From: Amoeboaphelidium protococcarum X5
Lineage: Eukaryota; Fungi; Aphelidiomycota
Assembly: GCA_023515725.1 (NCBI GenBank)
Contig: JALDTO010000033.1
Coordinates: 1 to 8,718 of the forward strand
DNA length: 8,718 bases
Reading direction: 5' to 3'
The translations under genes were made by a program, and so were the position numbers. Below, piece after piece: positions 274 through 8,718 of the stretch (its first letter is position 1; each line of letters begins with the position of its first letter). The notes beneath the pieces are model-generated. The model saw only the letters and a program-made list of their open reading frames with translations. It ran no database searches and was not told the origin of the DNA.

Positions 274-1822
274 ATGACGTAAGATTTTAAATCAAATGTT
301 CGTGTTAACTTGACCTTATTTACTCAATTTCTGTACTATGTTGAGTGTATGTAGAATTGCTGACACTACAACCAAGTTTTCCGTGCCAAAGAAGGCCAAC
401 TATACCGTCTATCCGGCTCCTTATGCGTTTGAAGTTCCCGGTTTCCGTAACTTTAATGGTCTTGCATTTTGGGGACTGAATCTGCTGACTCCTCTGGCTC
501 TAGTCTAGTTGTTGCAGACGCCTTACTGGAGTTACCCGCTCTTCCTGCTGCTCACTATCGTGCCGACTTGGGTTGGATATGTGTATGTGGATGCTTACTT
601 GAAGGTTTGGGCACACGACCAGCAGGTGAAGGCTGCCGGTTTGAAGTTGACTGACTATGTAAAGTTGACTGACGCCAAATTGGCTGACAAGTACCAGGGC
701 TCAAGCAAGATTCCAATGGAGACCTTTTTCGAGGCTTACTTTGATGAGAAAGCTGAGATTCGCGGTGACATGCTTGATCTGCTCGAACACAGACACGATT
801 GGGCCTCTTTCCACTTCACTGCAGGTCATGTCAAGTTTTTGGCTGAACATTTGCTGCCTGAAGCTACTTTCCACACTCGTTCGCAGGATAAGAACCAGGT
901 ATGTGAGCATTATGATCGCGGTAATGACTTTTATGAGGCGTTCTTGGGACCTATGATGATCTATACTTCTGGTATCATTACTGATGTCAACGAGAGAGAG
1001 TCTCTGGAGCAGTTGCAGGAGAATAAGATGAAGCTCGTGTGTGAAAAGATTGGCCTGAAGAGAGGCGAGAAGATGCTGGACATTGGATGTGGATGGGGCA
1101 CTCTGCTGTCTTTTGCTGCTCAAAAGTATGGTGCTAATCCAACTGGTGTCACTATTTCGAAAGAATAGACTGAGTTTGGTTTGAACAGAGCACAGGAGTG
1201 GGGTGTCAGTGACAAGGTCAATATTTTGAACAGAGATTATCGTGATATTCCTCGTCCAATGGCTGCTGGTGGTCAGAAATATAACAAGATCACTTGCCTG
1301 GAGATGGCTGAGCATGTTGGTATCAGAAAGTTTAACACTTTCCTACGCCAGGTTGACGAATTACTGGAAGACGATGGTATATTTTATCTCCAAATCGCCG
1401 GCCTCCGTCGCCCATGGCAATATGAAGATCTTGTCTGGGGTCTGTTCATGAACAAGTACGTGTTCCCTGGTGCTGATGCCTCTTGTCCTCTGGCTTGGGT
1501 TGTCAGTCAGCTGGAGTACGCCGGATTTGAAGTCCAGTCTGTGGACACTGTCGGTGTGCACTACTCTGCCACGCTGGAGAGATGGTACCAGAACTGGATG
1601 AAGCCTGAGAACAAGAGCATGATCACGGCCAAGTATGGTGAGCGTGCATGGCGTGAATGGGAGTTCTTCTTGGCTTGGAGTACTATTATCTCTCGCCAGG
1701 GAAGTGCCACCTGCTATCAGCTGGTTTGCCACAAGAATACCAACAAGTTTGATCGTGCCTCTTTCTTGCGTGGTTATGGCTAGAAGAGACTGATTGTGCC
1801 TTATGCATAGTAGCAGTAATGA
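274..1822 (+). CDS. Sphingolipid (glucosylceramide) C9-methyltransferase, CFA-synthase/CMAS-like SAM-dependent family; join(274..278,355..1822), about 490 aa with TAR=Gln
   Basis: ORF-track pieces 509-1168 and 1181-1783 share a frame and join through TAG 1166-1168 (GVTISKE[TAG]TEFG, matching the CFA-family GxT(L/I)SxxQ motif). Motifs seen: HYDRGNDFY, LGPMMIYTSG, SAM-binding LDIGCGWG, ITCLEMAEHVG, FMNKYVFPG, HYSATLERW. Two N-terminal hydrophobic segments are typical of fungal C9-methyltransferases rather than bacterial Cfa. Ends ...VPYA[TAG][TAG][CAG][TAA]-TGA at 1820-1822. An in-frame ATG at 338 is an alternative, intron-free start. Confidence 0.92.
279..354 (+). other. Spliceosomal intron (76 nt) in the methyltransferase gene
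   Basis: AAAATG AC|GTAAGA...AT-rich...GTATGTAG|A ATT GCT. Removing it puts ATG 274 in frame with the conserved ORF (MTIADTTTKF...). Confidence 0.75.
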
Positions 1823-2017
1823 TATTGAGGTTGTATGAGCGCGTGTGACATAATGTGAAGTCATATTGACCAACATGGTCAGTTATTTCATCAAATACTT
1901 AATACTTTTCATTTTAACTTTTTACCTTAATGATGCAAAGTGAAAATTGCAAAACGTCCTTGATACAAAAATATCTTGCGCGAAACAATAAAACAAGATT
2001 AAACATAGACTATTCAT

Positions 2018-4312
2018 TCAATTATCTAAAGTGCCATTCCACCTATCGAGAAATGAAAAGCACTCTGTTTGAATCTATGACAGCTGTGCATGATCATCAG
2101 CAGAATCATCGCTCTCATTCAATCGCTCACTCTAAATGGGAAACTACACTTGAGAGTGAAAGTAATAATGCAAAGGAGACTTGATAATTTACGTACTTGT
2201 TCCAACAGACTCAACAAATTGCTAACTGCAGATGCCTCGAATTTTGTATAGCTAAATAAAATCAACCACCTTAGGCACCATCTGCTATCTTTACTAGTAT
2301 CCCTAATAAATGGTCTTTATAATCTACTGCAGAACTGGAGATGAGCTATTATCTTTACCGCTGGACGGGCGGACGACTTTGCTAAGACTATCTGCCATTT
2401 AATCCATGGAGAAGCCTAAACCGCCAGTCTATTTATCCTACCCAATATTCGCGTCCTAATGCTACTAGGTGATACAACCATAGTAATAATCAAGCACTGG
2501 AAGAGGCATAAGGGAAGAGATTGATGAAATGTTCTAAGCTAATAACGTCTGAATGTTGTGCCTGAATCCAATTTTAGCATAATGCTGGCGTTATTCAGCG
2601 TCTAACTATTTAAATTAAGCAGCAACATCCAAATCTGTAATAATTTCAGCATTATCCTTGACGCGACCACTACTCATTGTACCAAGGCAATCATGTTCCA
2701 GTTTATAGCCAATCATAAAGTTGATATACTTGTGATTAAGCCGACATTTGAAGAGCTCAGCGCGTATCAGAGCGGACAAGATTTCAGCATATCTCTCTGG
2801 AGTGTCTGTACGAACTTCCCACTCTTCCTATGCCAACTGTACCAACTTTTATCTTTCTTTAGCATCAAATTTCCTCTCAACTGACAAAGCATTTTTGGGC
2901 ATATGCGTTTCAAACGTCAATAGCTCAACGTCGTTTTCAGCTTTATCATGCAAATACGCATTGCCAAATCGCTCAATTTTCAGTTCATTGACGCGTCTAT
3001 TCAAGAACTATTCATGTAATTGCTATTCATGCTTGTTCATTGAAAGCTTGAACCTAGTTTAATCACGGTCCTTAGACTTTGCTTTATCACTCCCAGCCGT
3101 AGATGATTTTAGTTTTCGAATGGGAGTTTAAGATTTTATGAGTTTAAGGGCCAGATCATCAGTAAGCCATTTATGCCAAGCGTTATCAAGAGTGTCAGAT
3201 TACGGTGGATTCCGAGATACTATACAATTATGAACCAGATACTTGAAAAACGCTGAACCATGGTCATTATACAAGACGCACTTGAGAGCAGATTGACGCA
3301 GAAGTAGCAGATCATGAAATTAAGATTTTAATTCTGGACTTGATCGCATTAAAAGCTATCGCGGCCGCCGACTCATTTATTAATTGATAGCTGCATACAT
3401 TTCCAACTACTCTCCAGAGGGCTCTAAATTTTCATCGCCATTCTCATCAATTTGCGCTTTCAACTGAGCTGCTAGAGTACTTATACTAAAATATTTACTC
3501 GAATTAAACCTGCGTTGATCGATGTCTTGAATGTTATACTGCAAACAGAGGGCATCCAGCGCATAGACATTCTTCTCATTCTGAGGCAAATCTCTCCACT
3601 AGGCCAAAATATGCTTCATAATACTAAAATGGTCGTAAGTGCTCAACTCCAAAGCCGTAGACGCGTAATTACTAACCGCATAATGATAAAAGGCCACCAT
3701 CTGAGTACTGCTCTTCTTTGCAGGCGGATCACCTCTCAGCTTCCCCTCCATCCTCCTAAAAAGATTCCTCTGACCAGCATTGAGATATCGCCAACAGATA
3801 GTCAAATGCGATTTAATACTATCCTCAGAAATACGAGAATTATCGGCACCGAGCTTCTGCATCAGAGTTGGGAAATTAATCTAACAGAAGAACGAATATC
3901 CTTCTTGATTCCCTTCACATTAGGACTATTACTACGAATTAACGACTGATGTGGATTATGATACATCTGAGCCATTTGATTTATCACCAGTTTTAGCATC
4001 ATTAGCTTTCTGCATGACTTTCATATTATGACTATGGGCCAATTCCGCATATTTCATTCGATCATACTCTGATAACTTGGTCCATTATCTGGCAGTCAAT
4101 TAGAAAAACGAAGTAGTAGACTGATTACAAGCTTTCGTAATTTCCATCTTCATGAAGAACTAATATGGTGTGAGATTAGAATTGGAGCTTTCAGCGGCAA
4201 TCTTATTAACTTGATCATTTATCAAAGCCTGATTTAAACCAGCGCGTCCAGGATTAACCATCTTTTTAGTGATAGCTTCGATGAGCTTTTCCGAGTTGGG
4301 TAATCTTGGCAT
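2018..4312 (-). CDS. Uncharacterised 764-aa protein with multiple divergent HMG-box-like repeats (putative DNA-binding/chromatin protein)
   Basis: One frame from ATG 4312 to TGA 2020-2018 has no internal TGA over 764 codons and about 43 internal TAA/TAG. It subsumes track ORFs 3599-3862 and 3407-3589. HMG-like units: LTPYQFFMKME...TARQWTKLSEYDRMKYAELA; GYSFFCQINF...LTICWRYLNAGQRNLF; VAFYHYAVSN...HILAQWRDLPQNEKNVYALDA; weaker KYINFMIGY...VAAQFKQLDAEQRQHYAKIG. The coding status is secure; the HMG call is by eye. Confidence 0.8.
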
Positions 4313-4591
4313 TATCAATCACTACAAATTACTATAATACTTACTTGTCCAAATAGCTAATAAAAAGATATCAGGACCAATATAAAAAACTACCACTATA
4401 TGCGTTCTCTCCAATGTTCCATCAGGAAAAAAAGATCTTCCGCGCGTTGATCATTTTGACGCGTTTTCTTGTTCTTTTTCTCGGCTGTTTTGTTACTCTC
4501 TTTCTTCCTCCTCTGTCTACAGTATAATATATCACAGTGGAACATCAATAACATAGTATACATATTTTATCATTTTTTAGACATATTTATA
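4313..4591. promoter_or_regulatory. Putative bidirectional promoter (HMG-like gene / RTF2)
   Basis: 279-bp head-to-head spacer with central CGCGCG (4441-4446), ACGCGT (4459-4464) and a pyrimidine-rich tract (about 4464-4519) toward RTF2. Confidence 0.55.
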
Positions 4592-5098
4592 ATGGGTGGA
4601 GATGGCGGATTTATTGCAAAGAGATCAGAGATTGTAAAGTTGGGGAAAGGATAAAGATAATAGATTCAGAGTAATGTTAGTGATTACCGATACTGCTCCC
4701 TGTCTCATGAAGAGCTGCGAGATCCTATAGTGTCATGTAAGAGAGGGAAGTTGTACAATAAAGAGGCTGTGGTGAAATACATTCTTGATAAACGGCTACG
4801 TGGTTAATCCAAAGGCGAGGGTGACAGAGCAGATATTGAGAACACTGAGTAGGACAACGTGGCTGGTCACATCAAACGGTTAAAGGATGTCACAGATCTT
4901 AAACTGACGCGCGGTGATGATGGACGTGTTATTTGCCCAGTCATTAGGCGGTAAATGAATGGACTCACCAAGTTTGTATATATGAAGCCCTGTGGATGCG
5001 TTGTCTCTTAGAATGCTGTTGATTTAGTTCCGTCTGCTACAGATTGCGTCAATTGCGGTGCTAGTGTGATTAAAGTTGTGCCTATCAAATATACTTGA
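4592..5098 (+). CDS. RTF2: Replication termination factor 2 (Rtf2/RTFDC1) RING-finger family protein, 168 aa
   Basis: With TAR=Gln: MGGDGGFIAKRSEIVK (family N-terminus MGxDGGxIxxRxELVK), YCSLSHEELRDPIVSCKRGKLYNKEAVVKYIL, HIKRLKDV, ICPVIRRQMNG...MKPCGCVVS...CVNCG. Seven internal TAR codons; TGA at 5096-5098. Confidence 0.9.
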
Positions 5099-5257
5099 AT
5101 TGATGTTGGATTTTCTTTTCGATTTATATTATCAGTTCTGAATGTAGCACTCAAGTTAAATGTGTACGTACTCTCTCTCAAATGTAATTAATTGTAACGA
5201 TGTTAACTTTTCTCACTTCAAAACATAACCATTCTTCATTCAATCAAACATTCAGTA

Positions 5258-6926
5258 TCAAAACATCAGCAATATAAGTGATGCGCTCACGGTGATCATC
5301 AAGTACCAGTCAAATTCAAAAGACAAGGCGCCCTCTGATGGATTAGATCCACCATTGTTAGAATTAGGAACAACTGTTTGGACAGGAGACTTAGTGGTCG
5401 TCTGAGGACCAGCATATGGTACAATTTTAAAAGTGCCAGATGTGGCAACAACGACGCCATACTGACTACCAGAGGGAAAGTAACCCGTAACTCTGACCAC
5501 ACAATTCTCCTTCTTGCCAAGAGACACTGGCACTCTCCAATAAGCATCGGTGGTGTTCTTCTGGCCAGATCTTAACAGTTATGCTACAAACACCAGAGAG
5601 CCTTTGGTGTCCTTTTCAAATAAATCAACATCCCAGCCAGTGACATTATTCTAAACATTAGGAATGGCTGCCCATGTAATCGTCTCTAGATTACCGCCGG
5701 TCCACTACTGATTCTGCAATGGCAAGGTGATAGCCAGTCCGGAAGTCAGTTAATTGCCAGCAAACACGCTAAAGTCAGTAGAAACTGCAGTGAATGCTCT
5801 CAAATCTCCTTGCGAATAGCCATAAACCGTAATGAAATAGCCATTGCTAGCTGGCAAAGACGGCACCTGATACTGATAGCTACCTTAGGAAGATGACACA
5901 TCAGAGGCAATAGTTAAAGGACTGCCATAATACGGAGTGGAAGCATCTCTTGATGACAAAATGATGGACCAAGTGTCAAAGGATGCAATGGATCCGCCAG
6001 TTTTTGAAGACAAAGAGATTGTCAAAATCTAACTCTTCTAAACAGAGTAGCTGGATAGATCAACACCGACACTGCTTACTCCACCTGGGCTTTAAATTTC
6101 AAAGTAGCTAGTCTCATCCAGGCAAGAAGGCTTTCCCTTGGAATCAGAGCAAGAGATGCGGAGTTGGTACGTGCTAGAAAATGGCAAGACTGGTGGAACA
6201 TTCCAAGAGAATGAGTTTATGCCTTGAGACCCACTTGCAAGATTGGCTGCAACAATAATACCACTTCTGATTGAAGGATCAGACGATTGAGAATCGAAGA
6301 AGACAATACTTGCCAGGGATGGATCGATAGTAGAGGTGGATCTGATATAGTAAGGAATCTTTACATTCTATCCAGCGCCAATAGTAGCCAAACTGTTCAT
6401 TATACCGACTGGAGACTTACTAATAACGAACAAGTCTGTATCAGGCAGTGACCAATAATTTGGATCTCCCGCCTTTTGGTTAGTGTACGGACCCCATACA
6501 CGGACAATGTACGTATTACCAGAGTTAGAACTAGCTGGCACTTTGAAAGTTAACTTAGTTTGATCCAAAGGAAGACTGTCTGCCAACTGTTTTACAAAGA
6601 ACTTGGTCTACACCGCTGCACTGTACAAGTCAACGTTGATGTACTGCACTGGAGGTGGATTCGTCAGTGTCCACTCCACAGTGACACTCTGATCAGCCCA
6701 CCAGATAGTTCCAGTCGTCGGAGTAACGACATAACCATCTACAATACAATAAATAATTGTCAAAATTACTTTTCACTTAAAAAGACATTGTCTTACCGCT
6801 TGAGCGCTTTTAGTTGATGATAGGAGACCTCTTTTCCTTACCAGAGCCACTCTCTTCCTTGGTAGAGAAATAAAACACAGCAATAGCTGCAACTAGTAAA
6901 ACTGCTATTCTGAAGTAGTTTAACAT
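5258..6926 (-). CDS. Secreted, probably GPI-anchored surface protein with four tandem Ig-like beta-sandwich units (resembling Kre9/Knh1 N-terminal, Ser/Thr-rich GPI-anchored family); complement join(5258..6738,6797..6926), about 536 aa
   Basis: N-terminal hydrophobic segment MLNYFRIAVLLVAAIAVFYF, then four units of about 105 aa sharing the pattern P..W..G..(V/I)T(V/I)xW...VDL...LA...(W/Y/F)xVP...Yx(V/L/I)(R/T)(V/I)...FxI. These are followed by a T/S/P-rich linker, small-residue omega region (NNGGS) and hydrophobic C-terminus WYLMITVSASLILLMF-TGA. About 11 internal TAR; includes track ORFs 6368-6586 and 5258-5533. Confidence 0.82.
6739..6796 (-). other. Spliceosomal intron (58 nt) in the GPI-protein gene
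   Basis: Minus strand G|GTAAGA...TTTGAC...ATTGTAG|AT. Very AT-rich; removal joins the signal-peptide exon in frame with exon 2 (KRSS-D-GYVVTP). Confidence 0.85.
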
Positions 6927-7209
6927 ATTTAGAGAAGTATTATGCAGACACAACTACGGAACACTACGTATTAAATACACTTGAGCAAAAGAGAGAGTGA
7001 GAAGTAAAGAAGAAGAACAAGAAGTGAAACAACAGAGAAAGCGAATGGAAGCGAAACGGAATGTGAAACGAGAAACTCTGCGCGTCTCACTTGATGGATC
7101 ATCCTGTAAAGGGCTTAGCGGTTGAGAGAAAAGTCAGGCCGACCTCTGACTGACTGCAAAAAGCATTGTTTCGGGCAGATACTGTACTTTTAACTTGCAA
7201 CTACGTGTA
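6927..7209. promoter_or_regulatory. Putative bidirectional promoter (GPI protein / TMEM42-like)
   Basis: 283-bp head-to-head spacer with central GCGCGT (7080-7085) and a GA-rich tract (about 6987-7040, CT-rich on the minus strand) toward the GPI gene. Confidence 0.5.
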
Positions 7210-7626
7210 ATGATATTGGCAATATGTTCTGGGTTTATGGCAGCATTATCATCAGTGTTTGCTAAAATGACTCTATCCGCACAGACTCTTGAGTATCTCC
7301 GGGTGATTGTTGGATATTTCGGATACATTGATGTTTAGGAACTGGCTGGTGTTGAGAGGTACGCCAAGTTTATCAGTAGCGCTCTTGTAATCTTATGCAA
7401 TGTGTTAATGTGGGCTATATTCACTAAAGCTCTGGCCAAATCAAAATCTGCTGTATCTGCCACAGTCATTAACACTGCCAGTAATTTCTGTTTCTCTGCA
7501 CTGCTCGGTCACTTGTTCTTTAATGAGAGTTTAAATGCTCAGTGGTGGGGCGGTTGTTCGATGATCATTGCTGGATGTGTACTGATCAACTTTGACATTT
7601 CGAAAGGTGCAGTAAAACAAGACTGA
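7210..7626 (+). CDS. TMEM42: TMEM42-like small multi-pass membrane protein (DMT/EamA-like superfamily), 138 aa
   Basis: MILAICSGFMAALSSVFAK...CNVLMWAIFTKAL...SAVSATVINTASNFCFSALLGHLFFNESLNAQWWGG.SMIIAGCVLI matches my recollection of the TMEM42 family pattern. One internal TAG (7336-7338); TGA at 7624-7626. Confidence 0.8.
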
Positions 7627-7710
7627 CGCGTTATTGCTTCTGTGTAATTAAAATCATATCTTTTTTGAATCATTGCTGCTTCTACTCTAAGAACTCACAC
7701 TCCTTTATGA

Positions 7711-8718
7711 TCAGTCATCCTGCTTATGCTTCTTATGCTCTCGTTTCTCTTTCTTGTCCTTTTTCTCCTTCTTCTCTTTCTTCTCCTTCTTCACCTTCTT
7801 ATCAGCAACCACATTTTCAGCACCATCCGCCTGCTTAATTTCTTCGCTATCGCTTCCACTCAGATTAGCATCGACGGCGCTTCTCTTGGCATCAGCATCA
7901 CTTGCGGTGGTTGGAGCCACTGGAGAAGTCTGCTGATCAGCTACTCTTTGCAGTTCAACGTACGATTAGGTCCACTCTTTAGGAGTTTGCTCGTTAGGCT
8001 GACCAAACTTGTCCAACTTTCCATCCTTGATCATCTTCTTCTTCTCGCTAGCCTTTGGACCCAGACCCCACTTTCTTGGATAGGTATCACGCTCCATGAT
8101 GACACGCTTAATCTTGGCTACCACACCATGATCACAGGACGCCATTTCTACAGTTGTCATTTGGGCAATACCCAAAGCGATCGCCTCACCTTTCGTGGTC
8201 ATTAGCACAACTTCTTCATTCTGTTCGATACCATTCTCGTAACGCAACAGACCTGGGATCATCAATTTGGCACCATAACATACGGCATTGATGGCAGAGT
8301 CCTTGACGACAATACGCTTGTACGAGACCAGCAGAGATTCCAATGGGCGGATAGCATGACGCAGATAAGTCTCATCACGCGTGTTATCATACAACCACTG
8401 AGCATCCAGAACATCATGCATAGTGACCATACTGTCAGACTCCGATGTAGCACCGGAGCGGACACGTCTCAATTCCTGCATATGAGCACCGACACCAAGC
8501 AAAAGTCCCAGGTGAACACACAGTGTACGAATATAAGTACCAGCCTCACAACTCACCCAAAATACAGCAAGACCGCGCTCATTATCAAACTCCAGCAGCT
8601 TGCTCTCATGAATGGTACGAATACGCAGCTATCTCTTCACAGCAGAAATCAAAGGTGGACGCTGGAATAGAGCACCAGTCAGAGTCTCCAACGCGGCCAC
8701 CAGTTTCTTCTCAGACTC
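7711..8718 (-). CDS. CBF5: H/ACA snoRNP pseudouridine synthase Cbf5/dyskerin, 5'-truncated by the window edge (C-terminal 335 aa)
   Basis: [17 protein letters not shown][TAG][44 protein letters not shown] domain ([24 protein letters not shown]...[18 protein letters not shown]), then EWT[TAA]SYV and a KKE-repeat tail. TGA at 7713-7711. Confidence 0.97.
7729..7800 (-). repeat. Coding low-complexity (AAG AAG GAG)-type repeat giving the KKE/D tail of Cbf5
   Basis: Translates as [24 protein letters not shown], a known feature of Cbf5/Nop56/Nop58 C-termini. Confidence 0.85.

Follow-up and report, generated by a model that had tools for sequence, protein, structure and literature searches.

The 8,718-nucleotide (nt) stretch of Amoeboaphelidium protococcarum X5 DNA analyzed here (the window) is, with a probability that we put at about 95%, nuclear DNA translated with genetic code table 6, in which UAA and UAG are ordinary codons for glutamine (Gln), with UGA terminating almost every gene and possibly every one. 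Read with TGA as its sole stop, the window contains six genes that lie on both strands in alternating orientation. Together these genes contain 70 in-frame TAA or TAG codons (TAR; 28 TAA and 42 TAG, or 6, 43, 7, 11, 1 and 2 per gene), which is exactly the sum that an earlier, sequence-only reading had counted by hand, and its observation that none of the six contains an internal TGA and that all six terminate in TGA was reproduced as well. The three longest frames free of TGA have 766, 504 and 502 codons, more than the maximum of 466 seen in 300 dinucleotide-matched simulations, and the five complete genes (490, 764, 168, 536 and 138 amino acids, aa) have the same lengths as the NCBI calls at orthologous loci of another strain. 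Homologue columns, synonymous-rate codon swaps, cognate transfer RNA (tRNA) genes and RNA-like contigs agree in assigning Gln to TAA and TAG, as the sequence-only reading had proposed.

The genome of A. protococcarum was reportedly published by Mikhailov et al. in 2022. The same species had been guessed from the letters of the window, and the guess was right: the three named members of the cluster to which the window's EamA-family protein belongs (KAI3635335.1, locus tag MIR68_006901; KAI3643711.1; KAI3646228.1) are all A. protococcarum. Later papers credit the UAR-to-Gln change in this species to Karpov et al. 2013 (Protist 164:195) and list it as established (PMC5304391, PMC11687900, PMC6299283). 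In Paraphelidium, a related aphelid, the code is the standard one (PMC6299283). Because it has been published since 2013, the code is not new; what we describe is the published case and not an independent reassignment. The suggestion that the window might represent a new reassignment, which had been made for the event that the source was some other opisthokont, falls away with the identification of the source.

Conserved columns in homologues give the most immediate view of what the codons mean. The TAG at 1166-1168, which had been placed at the Gln of a CFA-family motif in the methyltransferase gene, stands in a column where 107 of the 116 homologues aligned have Q. The TAG at 8629-8631, said to occupy a conserved Gln of Cbf5, stands in the VKRQLR motif, where Q is the top residue among diverse homologues (26, followed by N and E with 4 each). 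Both TAG columns thus have Q as their dominant amino acid. Outside the window, the Gln of the catalytic GGQ of the release factor eRF1 is encoded by TAG in one homeolog (L037) and by CAA or CAG (CAR) in the other (L038). None of the window's TAA codons lies in a strongly conserved column, and the column evidence within the window is therefore evidence on TAG. The mixed run TAG-TAG-CAG-TAA at 1808-1819 is present as described, but no homologue aligns with the tail that holds it, and by itself the run is therefore no evidence for Gln. This methyltransferase tail (1781-1822) consists of 13 codons, four of them TAR, and all four copies keep its frame; possibly this was once a 3’ untranslated region captured when UAG became a sense codon. 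A metagenome scan with the methyltransferase recovered 55 relatives, none of which has TAR in the aligned Gln columns, and hence no further carrier of the code.

The duplicated state of the genome allowed codon meaning to be read from exchanges between gene copies. Contig C200 carries a copy of the whole window at 91.6% identity (its homeolog), and the assembly of the other strain, MP228 (GCA_023515745.1), has two window loci, at 95.6% and 97.9% identity, with gene order kept. Paired copies were also seen for the tRNAs, eRF1, pelota, and the Ras and Hsp genes, in agreement with the genome-wide gene duplication reported for A. protococcarum (PMC10608142). Across the copies of 12 genes, first-position T/C swaps between TAR and CAR affect 39 of 330 codons (11.8%), against 40 of 369 (10.8%) for the synonymous Leu pair TTR/CTR and 0-2% for the non-synonymous pairs (Tyr/His, Ser/Pro, Phe/Leu, Cys/Arg and Trp/Arg). 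By these rates, TAR codons act as CAR synonyms. When the window is compared with its homeolog, TAA exchanges with CAA or CAG eight times, TAG with CAG or CAA twelve times, and TAA with TAG five times. Four copies, each assembled independently, also have TAR at the same positions and show purifying selection elsewhere. Close strains are widespread, as near-identical sequence is present in eight sequencing studies, with biofilm, freshwater and sediment samples among them.

Transcripts were checked in assembled contigs of related strains rather than in raw reads of the source strain. Coverage of the genes comes from metatranscriptome contigs and contigs of RNA-like runs, and in three of the four runs the intron has been spliced out. 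TAG 1166 is retained in the RNA contig of run X13 (record 3). The run labeled X5 is of unrecorded kind, but its depth follows the genes; of the 764-aa gene's 33 TAR codons it retains 32. The sole change is an allele that the other strain has too, and one TAA is new. The RNA and RNA-like contigs of related strains therefore retain TAR, in line with the absence of U-to-C editing, a check that the sequence-only reading had proposed.

The decoding machinery agrees with this reading. Among 63 scored tRNA matches, two genes have a CUA anticodon (L060, L061) and two a UUA anticodon (L068, L069), so that both of the anticodons to be looked for were found, on tRNA bodies whose nearest relative is tRNA-Gln. 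The two kinds match each other at 68 of 72 positions, tRNA-Gln(UUG) at 50-52 of 72, and other compared tRNAs at no more than 35; a cloverleaf fold was obtained for the CUA tRNA. Contigs C158 and C200 each carry one CUA and one UUA gene, 15-20 kb apart. At the position of the G1-C72 pair of tRNA-Gln(UUG), both tRNAs are mismatched (U1-C72). No Gln-CUG tRNA was seen among the 63 scored matches of 1171 candidates, which is no evidence of its absence. Of the loci matching PF03463, one homeolog pair is eRF1 (L037/L038) and the remaining pair is pelota by sequence. Inspection of eRF1 domain 1 revealed alterations at two motifs, TASNIKS and YxCxxxF: by human numbering F56Q, T58A, S60V, L124M and L126Q, with GTS, E55, NIKS, S70, Y125 and C127 kept. 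Ciliate release factors specific for UGA differ at these same motifs (PMC3632111). We predict that the CUA and UUA tRNAs are charged with Gln and that this eRF1 is biased toward UGA. The change may have begun with duplication of a tRNA-Gln gene and mutation of one copy at position 36 (UUG to UUA), after which a second copy would have acquired CUA. With both tRNAs charged with Gln, eRF1 could have ceased largely or wholly to recognize UAR, with UGA recognition kept, and CAR codons would afterwards have drifted to TAR.

Several other explanations deserve consideration. The gene content is fungus-like and the best named methyltransferase match is in Paraphelidium, as might be expected of some other opisthokont with its own UAR-to-Gln reassignment, but all three of the named cluster members are A. 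protococcarum and two loci of a second strain of that species are syntenic with the window at the identities given above; unless the species label at NCBI is wrong, we reject this source as extremely improbable. The standard code breaks every gene in the window, and TAR codons could then be true stops in pseudogenes or products of assembly error, or could be edited from U to C in mRNA. There is next to no chance of this either, since four separately assembled copies share their TAR positions and show purifying selection elsewhere, TAG 1166 is retained in the runs behind the spliced RNA contigs (some of them carrying extra TAR alleles), and cognate UUA and CUA tRNA genes exist; on these grounds it too was rejected. 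Finally, UAA and UAG might specify different amino acids, or one of them might not be Gln, a concern raised by the restriction of the window's column evidence to TAG. The exchanges of TAA with CAR, of TAG with CAR and of TAA with TAG between the homeologs, and the single Gln-like body shared by both tRNAs, make such a division of meaning very unlikely.

Whether UGA is the only stop is less settled than the meaning of UAR inside genes. The terminal TGA is conserved in all three or four copies of 12 genes, with no terminal swap between TGA and TAA. It follows EEVD in three mapped cytosolic Hsp70 genes, and CaaX or GCC in several Ras-family genes (matches to the GCC + TRR motif number at least 100). 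EEVD followed by TAA or TAG gave 16 matches, none of them mapping to Hsp70 or Hsp90 matches. A hand tally inside the Ras, Hsp70 and Hsp90 matches found 3 TGA against more than 250 TAR, and with internal TGA absent from the six window genes there is no sign of UGA as a sense codon. The claim that TGA is the sole stop was thus borne out at all gene ends read, but it is not proven genome-wide and is challenged by one Ras-family pair. In both homeologs of this pair (matches at C136:319207-319776 on the minus strand and C244:237104-237676 on the plus strand), K-C-V-V-M-TAA follows in frame 19 codons on; the motif search places it at C136:319132-319149(-) and C244:237734-237751(+). The same search gave, as motif matches not placed in a gene or frame, a second probable homeolog pair with KCVVM/KCVVI-TAA, at C154:678009(-) and C264:2188645(+).

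It is possible that UAR means Gln inside genes while UAA, where it is close to the poly(A) tail, is also the stop of a minority of genes, a modification of the table 6 reading that we rate somewhat below even odds. In addition to the two pairs, a K-CaaX-like pattern followed by TAA is seen 87 times against 70 in the control, compared with 43 against 51 for TAG (the corresponding figures for TGA, 96 and 45, are inflated by repeats), and 2 of the 12 genes end in TAA-TGA in every copy. However, that TAA-TGA excess was not repeated, as 0 of 57 further open reading frames (ORFs) have TAA as the last codon before TGA, and the lack of any terminal TGA/TAA swap across the copies of the 12 genes speaks against termination at UAA as well. 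The Ras pair was read only up to the TAA, and a short extension such as CVVMQ-stop may follow. In the 12 genes TAR is not depleted toward the end (18 of 360 in the last 30 codons against 171 of 4944). TAR also lies close to C-terminal ends that are apparently intact, with a TAA five codons before the C-terminal HEEL signal at locus L032 and a TAG seven codons before the shared end of loci L015 and L016, so nearness to the end is not enough to turn TAR into a stop. No report of context-dependent use of a codon as both stop and sense was found in the literature for any opisthokont. Termination by UAA in a small set of genes (for example, the Ras-family CVVM-UAA), with UGA as the main stop, is therefore offered tentatively, and the balance leans slightly the other way.

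Some points weigh against table 6 with a strict UGA stop as the code of this genome. The Gln meaning is drawn from sequence comparison and not from peptides; the share read directly is about 0.2 Mb of an assembly of 23.6 Mb in 346 contigs (MIR68 locus tags); and the Ras-family pair with CaaX-TAA is at odds with UGA as the exclusive stop. The N domain of eRF1 alone is, moreover, not always enough to fix stop-codon specificity (PMC3632111).

Protein searches of the window were made with stop-free pieces, and spliced gene models were joined computationally. On the plus strand, a sphingolipid C9-methyltransferase of the CMAS family (274..1822, 490 aa, ending in TGA) holds 1 TAA and 5 TAG (506, 1166, 1781, 1808, 1811 and 1817); its intron (279-354) is confirmed by a GT..AG joint in contigs of three sequencing runs. 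It is followed on the minus strand by an HMG-like gene of 764 aa with a faint HMG-box match (4312-2018; 17 TAA and 26 TAG; ending in TGA), which evolves fast relative to its neighbors, with 91 non-synonymous and 86 synonymous codon differences between homeologs. An Rtf2-family gene of 168 aa (4592..5098, plus strand) has 4 TAA and 3 TAG and ends in TGA. The 536-aa gene at 6926-5258 on the minus strand (5 TAA and 6 TAG, ending in TGA) encodes a secreted or surface protein with a faint Kre9_KNH match; its one intron, at about 6739-6796, was placed from the NCBI protein length and not from reads. The EamA-family membrane protein (7210..7626, plus strand, 138 aa, ending in TGA) has no TAA and a single TAG, for which the NCBI record gives Q. 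Cbf5/dyskerin (8718-7711, minus strand; Pfam DKCLD, TruB and PUA) is 5’-partial, continuing past the contig end, and terminates in TGA; its TAR codons are the TAG at 8629-8631 and a TAA at 7966-7968.

The TAR share of Gln codons ranges from 14% in the Cbf5 part and 23% in the methyltransferase to 63% in the HMG-like gene and 88% in Rtf2. The methyltransferase has deep RNA-like coverage, and the share per gene suggests that highly expressed genes prefer CAR over TAR. Elsewhere in the assembly, two loci adjoining tRNA genes contain Gag-like ORFs that end in a CCHC zinc knuckle and are readable only in table 6 (L009, 1817-2858; L029, 1742-2879). These are, as far as sequence can tell, putative tRNA-targeting elements resembling long terminal repeat retrotransposons and adapted to the host code. 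The 28,427-bp contig C346 is probably mitochondrial; it has clustered tRNAs for Trp, Gln, Asn and Tyr (L072) that do not resemble their nuclear counterparts.

Table 6 is used by ciliates (Tetrahymena, Paramecium, Stylonychia), hexamitid diplomonads, ulvophytes and oxymonads. As in A. protococcarum, UAA and UAG encode Gln in these lineages, UGA is the stop, dedicated tRNAs are present, and eRF1 is changed at TASNIKS and residues 124/126; the origin in A. protococcarum is nevertheless independent and lies inside the opisthokonts. The eRF1 solutions also differ in detail: AAVNIKS and L126Q here, against KATNIKD, SIKD/DPQ and QFM in ciliates, although L124M is shared with the QFM determinant of Stylonychia (PMC3632111). 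Relative to the published A. protococcarum code we found no difference, with species, codons and amino acid the same and NCBI proteins already using it. A possible likeness to Condylostoma, Parduczia, Blastocrithidia and Amoebophrya is a UAA read as sense within genes but as stop at the ends of some, perhaps so in the one Ras-family pair. Unlike in codes of the Condylostoma or Blastocrithidia type, UGA is not a sense codon here and stays the dominant stop, and a putative dual UAA would affect few genes.

As the code has been published and is in the NCBI annotation, its recovery here adds no new biology; only residual UAA termination, if true, could surprise specialists, and it is unproven. ORF calls and homology searches on this genome need table 6. 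Moreover, the duplicated genome is a built-in test of codon meaning, and the UUA and CUA tRNAs, together with a modestly changed eRF1, amount to a testable mechanism of stop-codon reassignment in a culturable relative of fungi that parasitizes algae.

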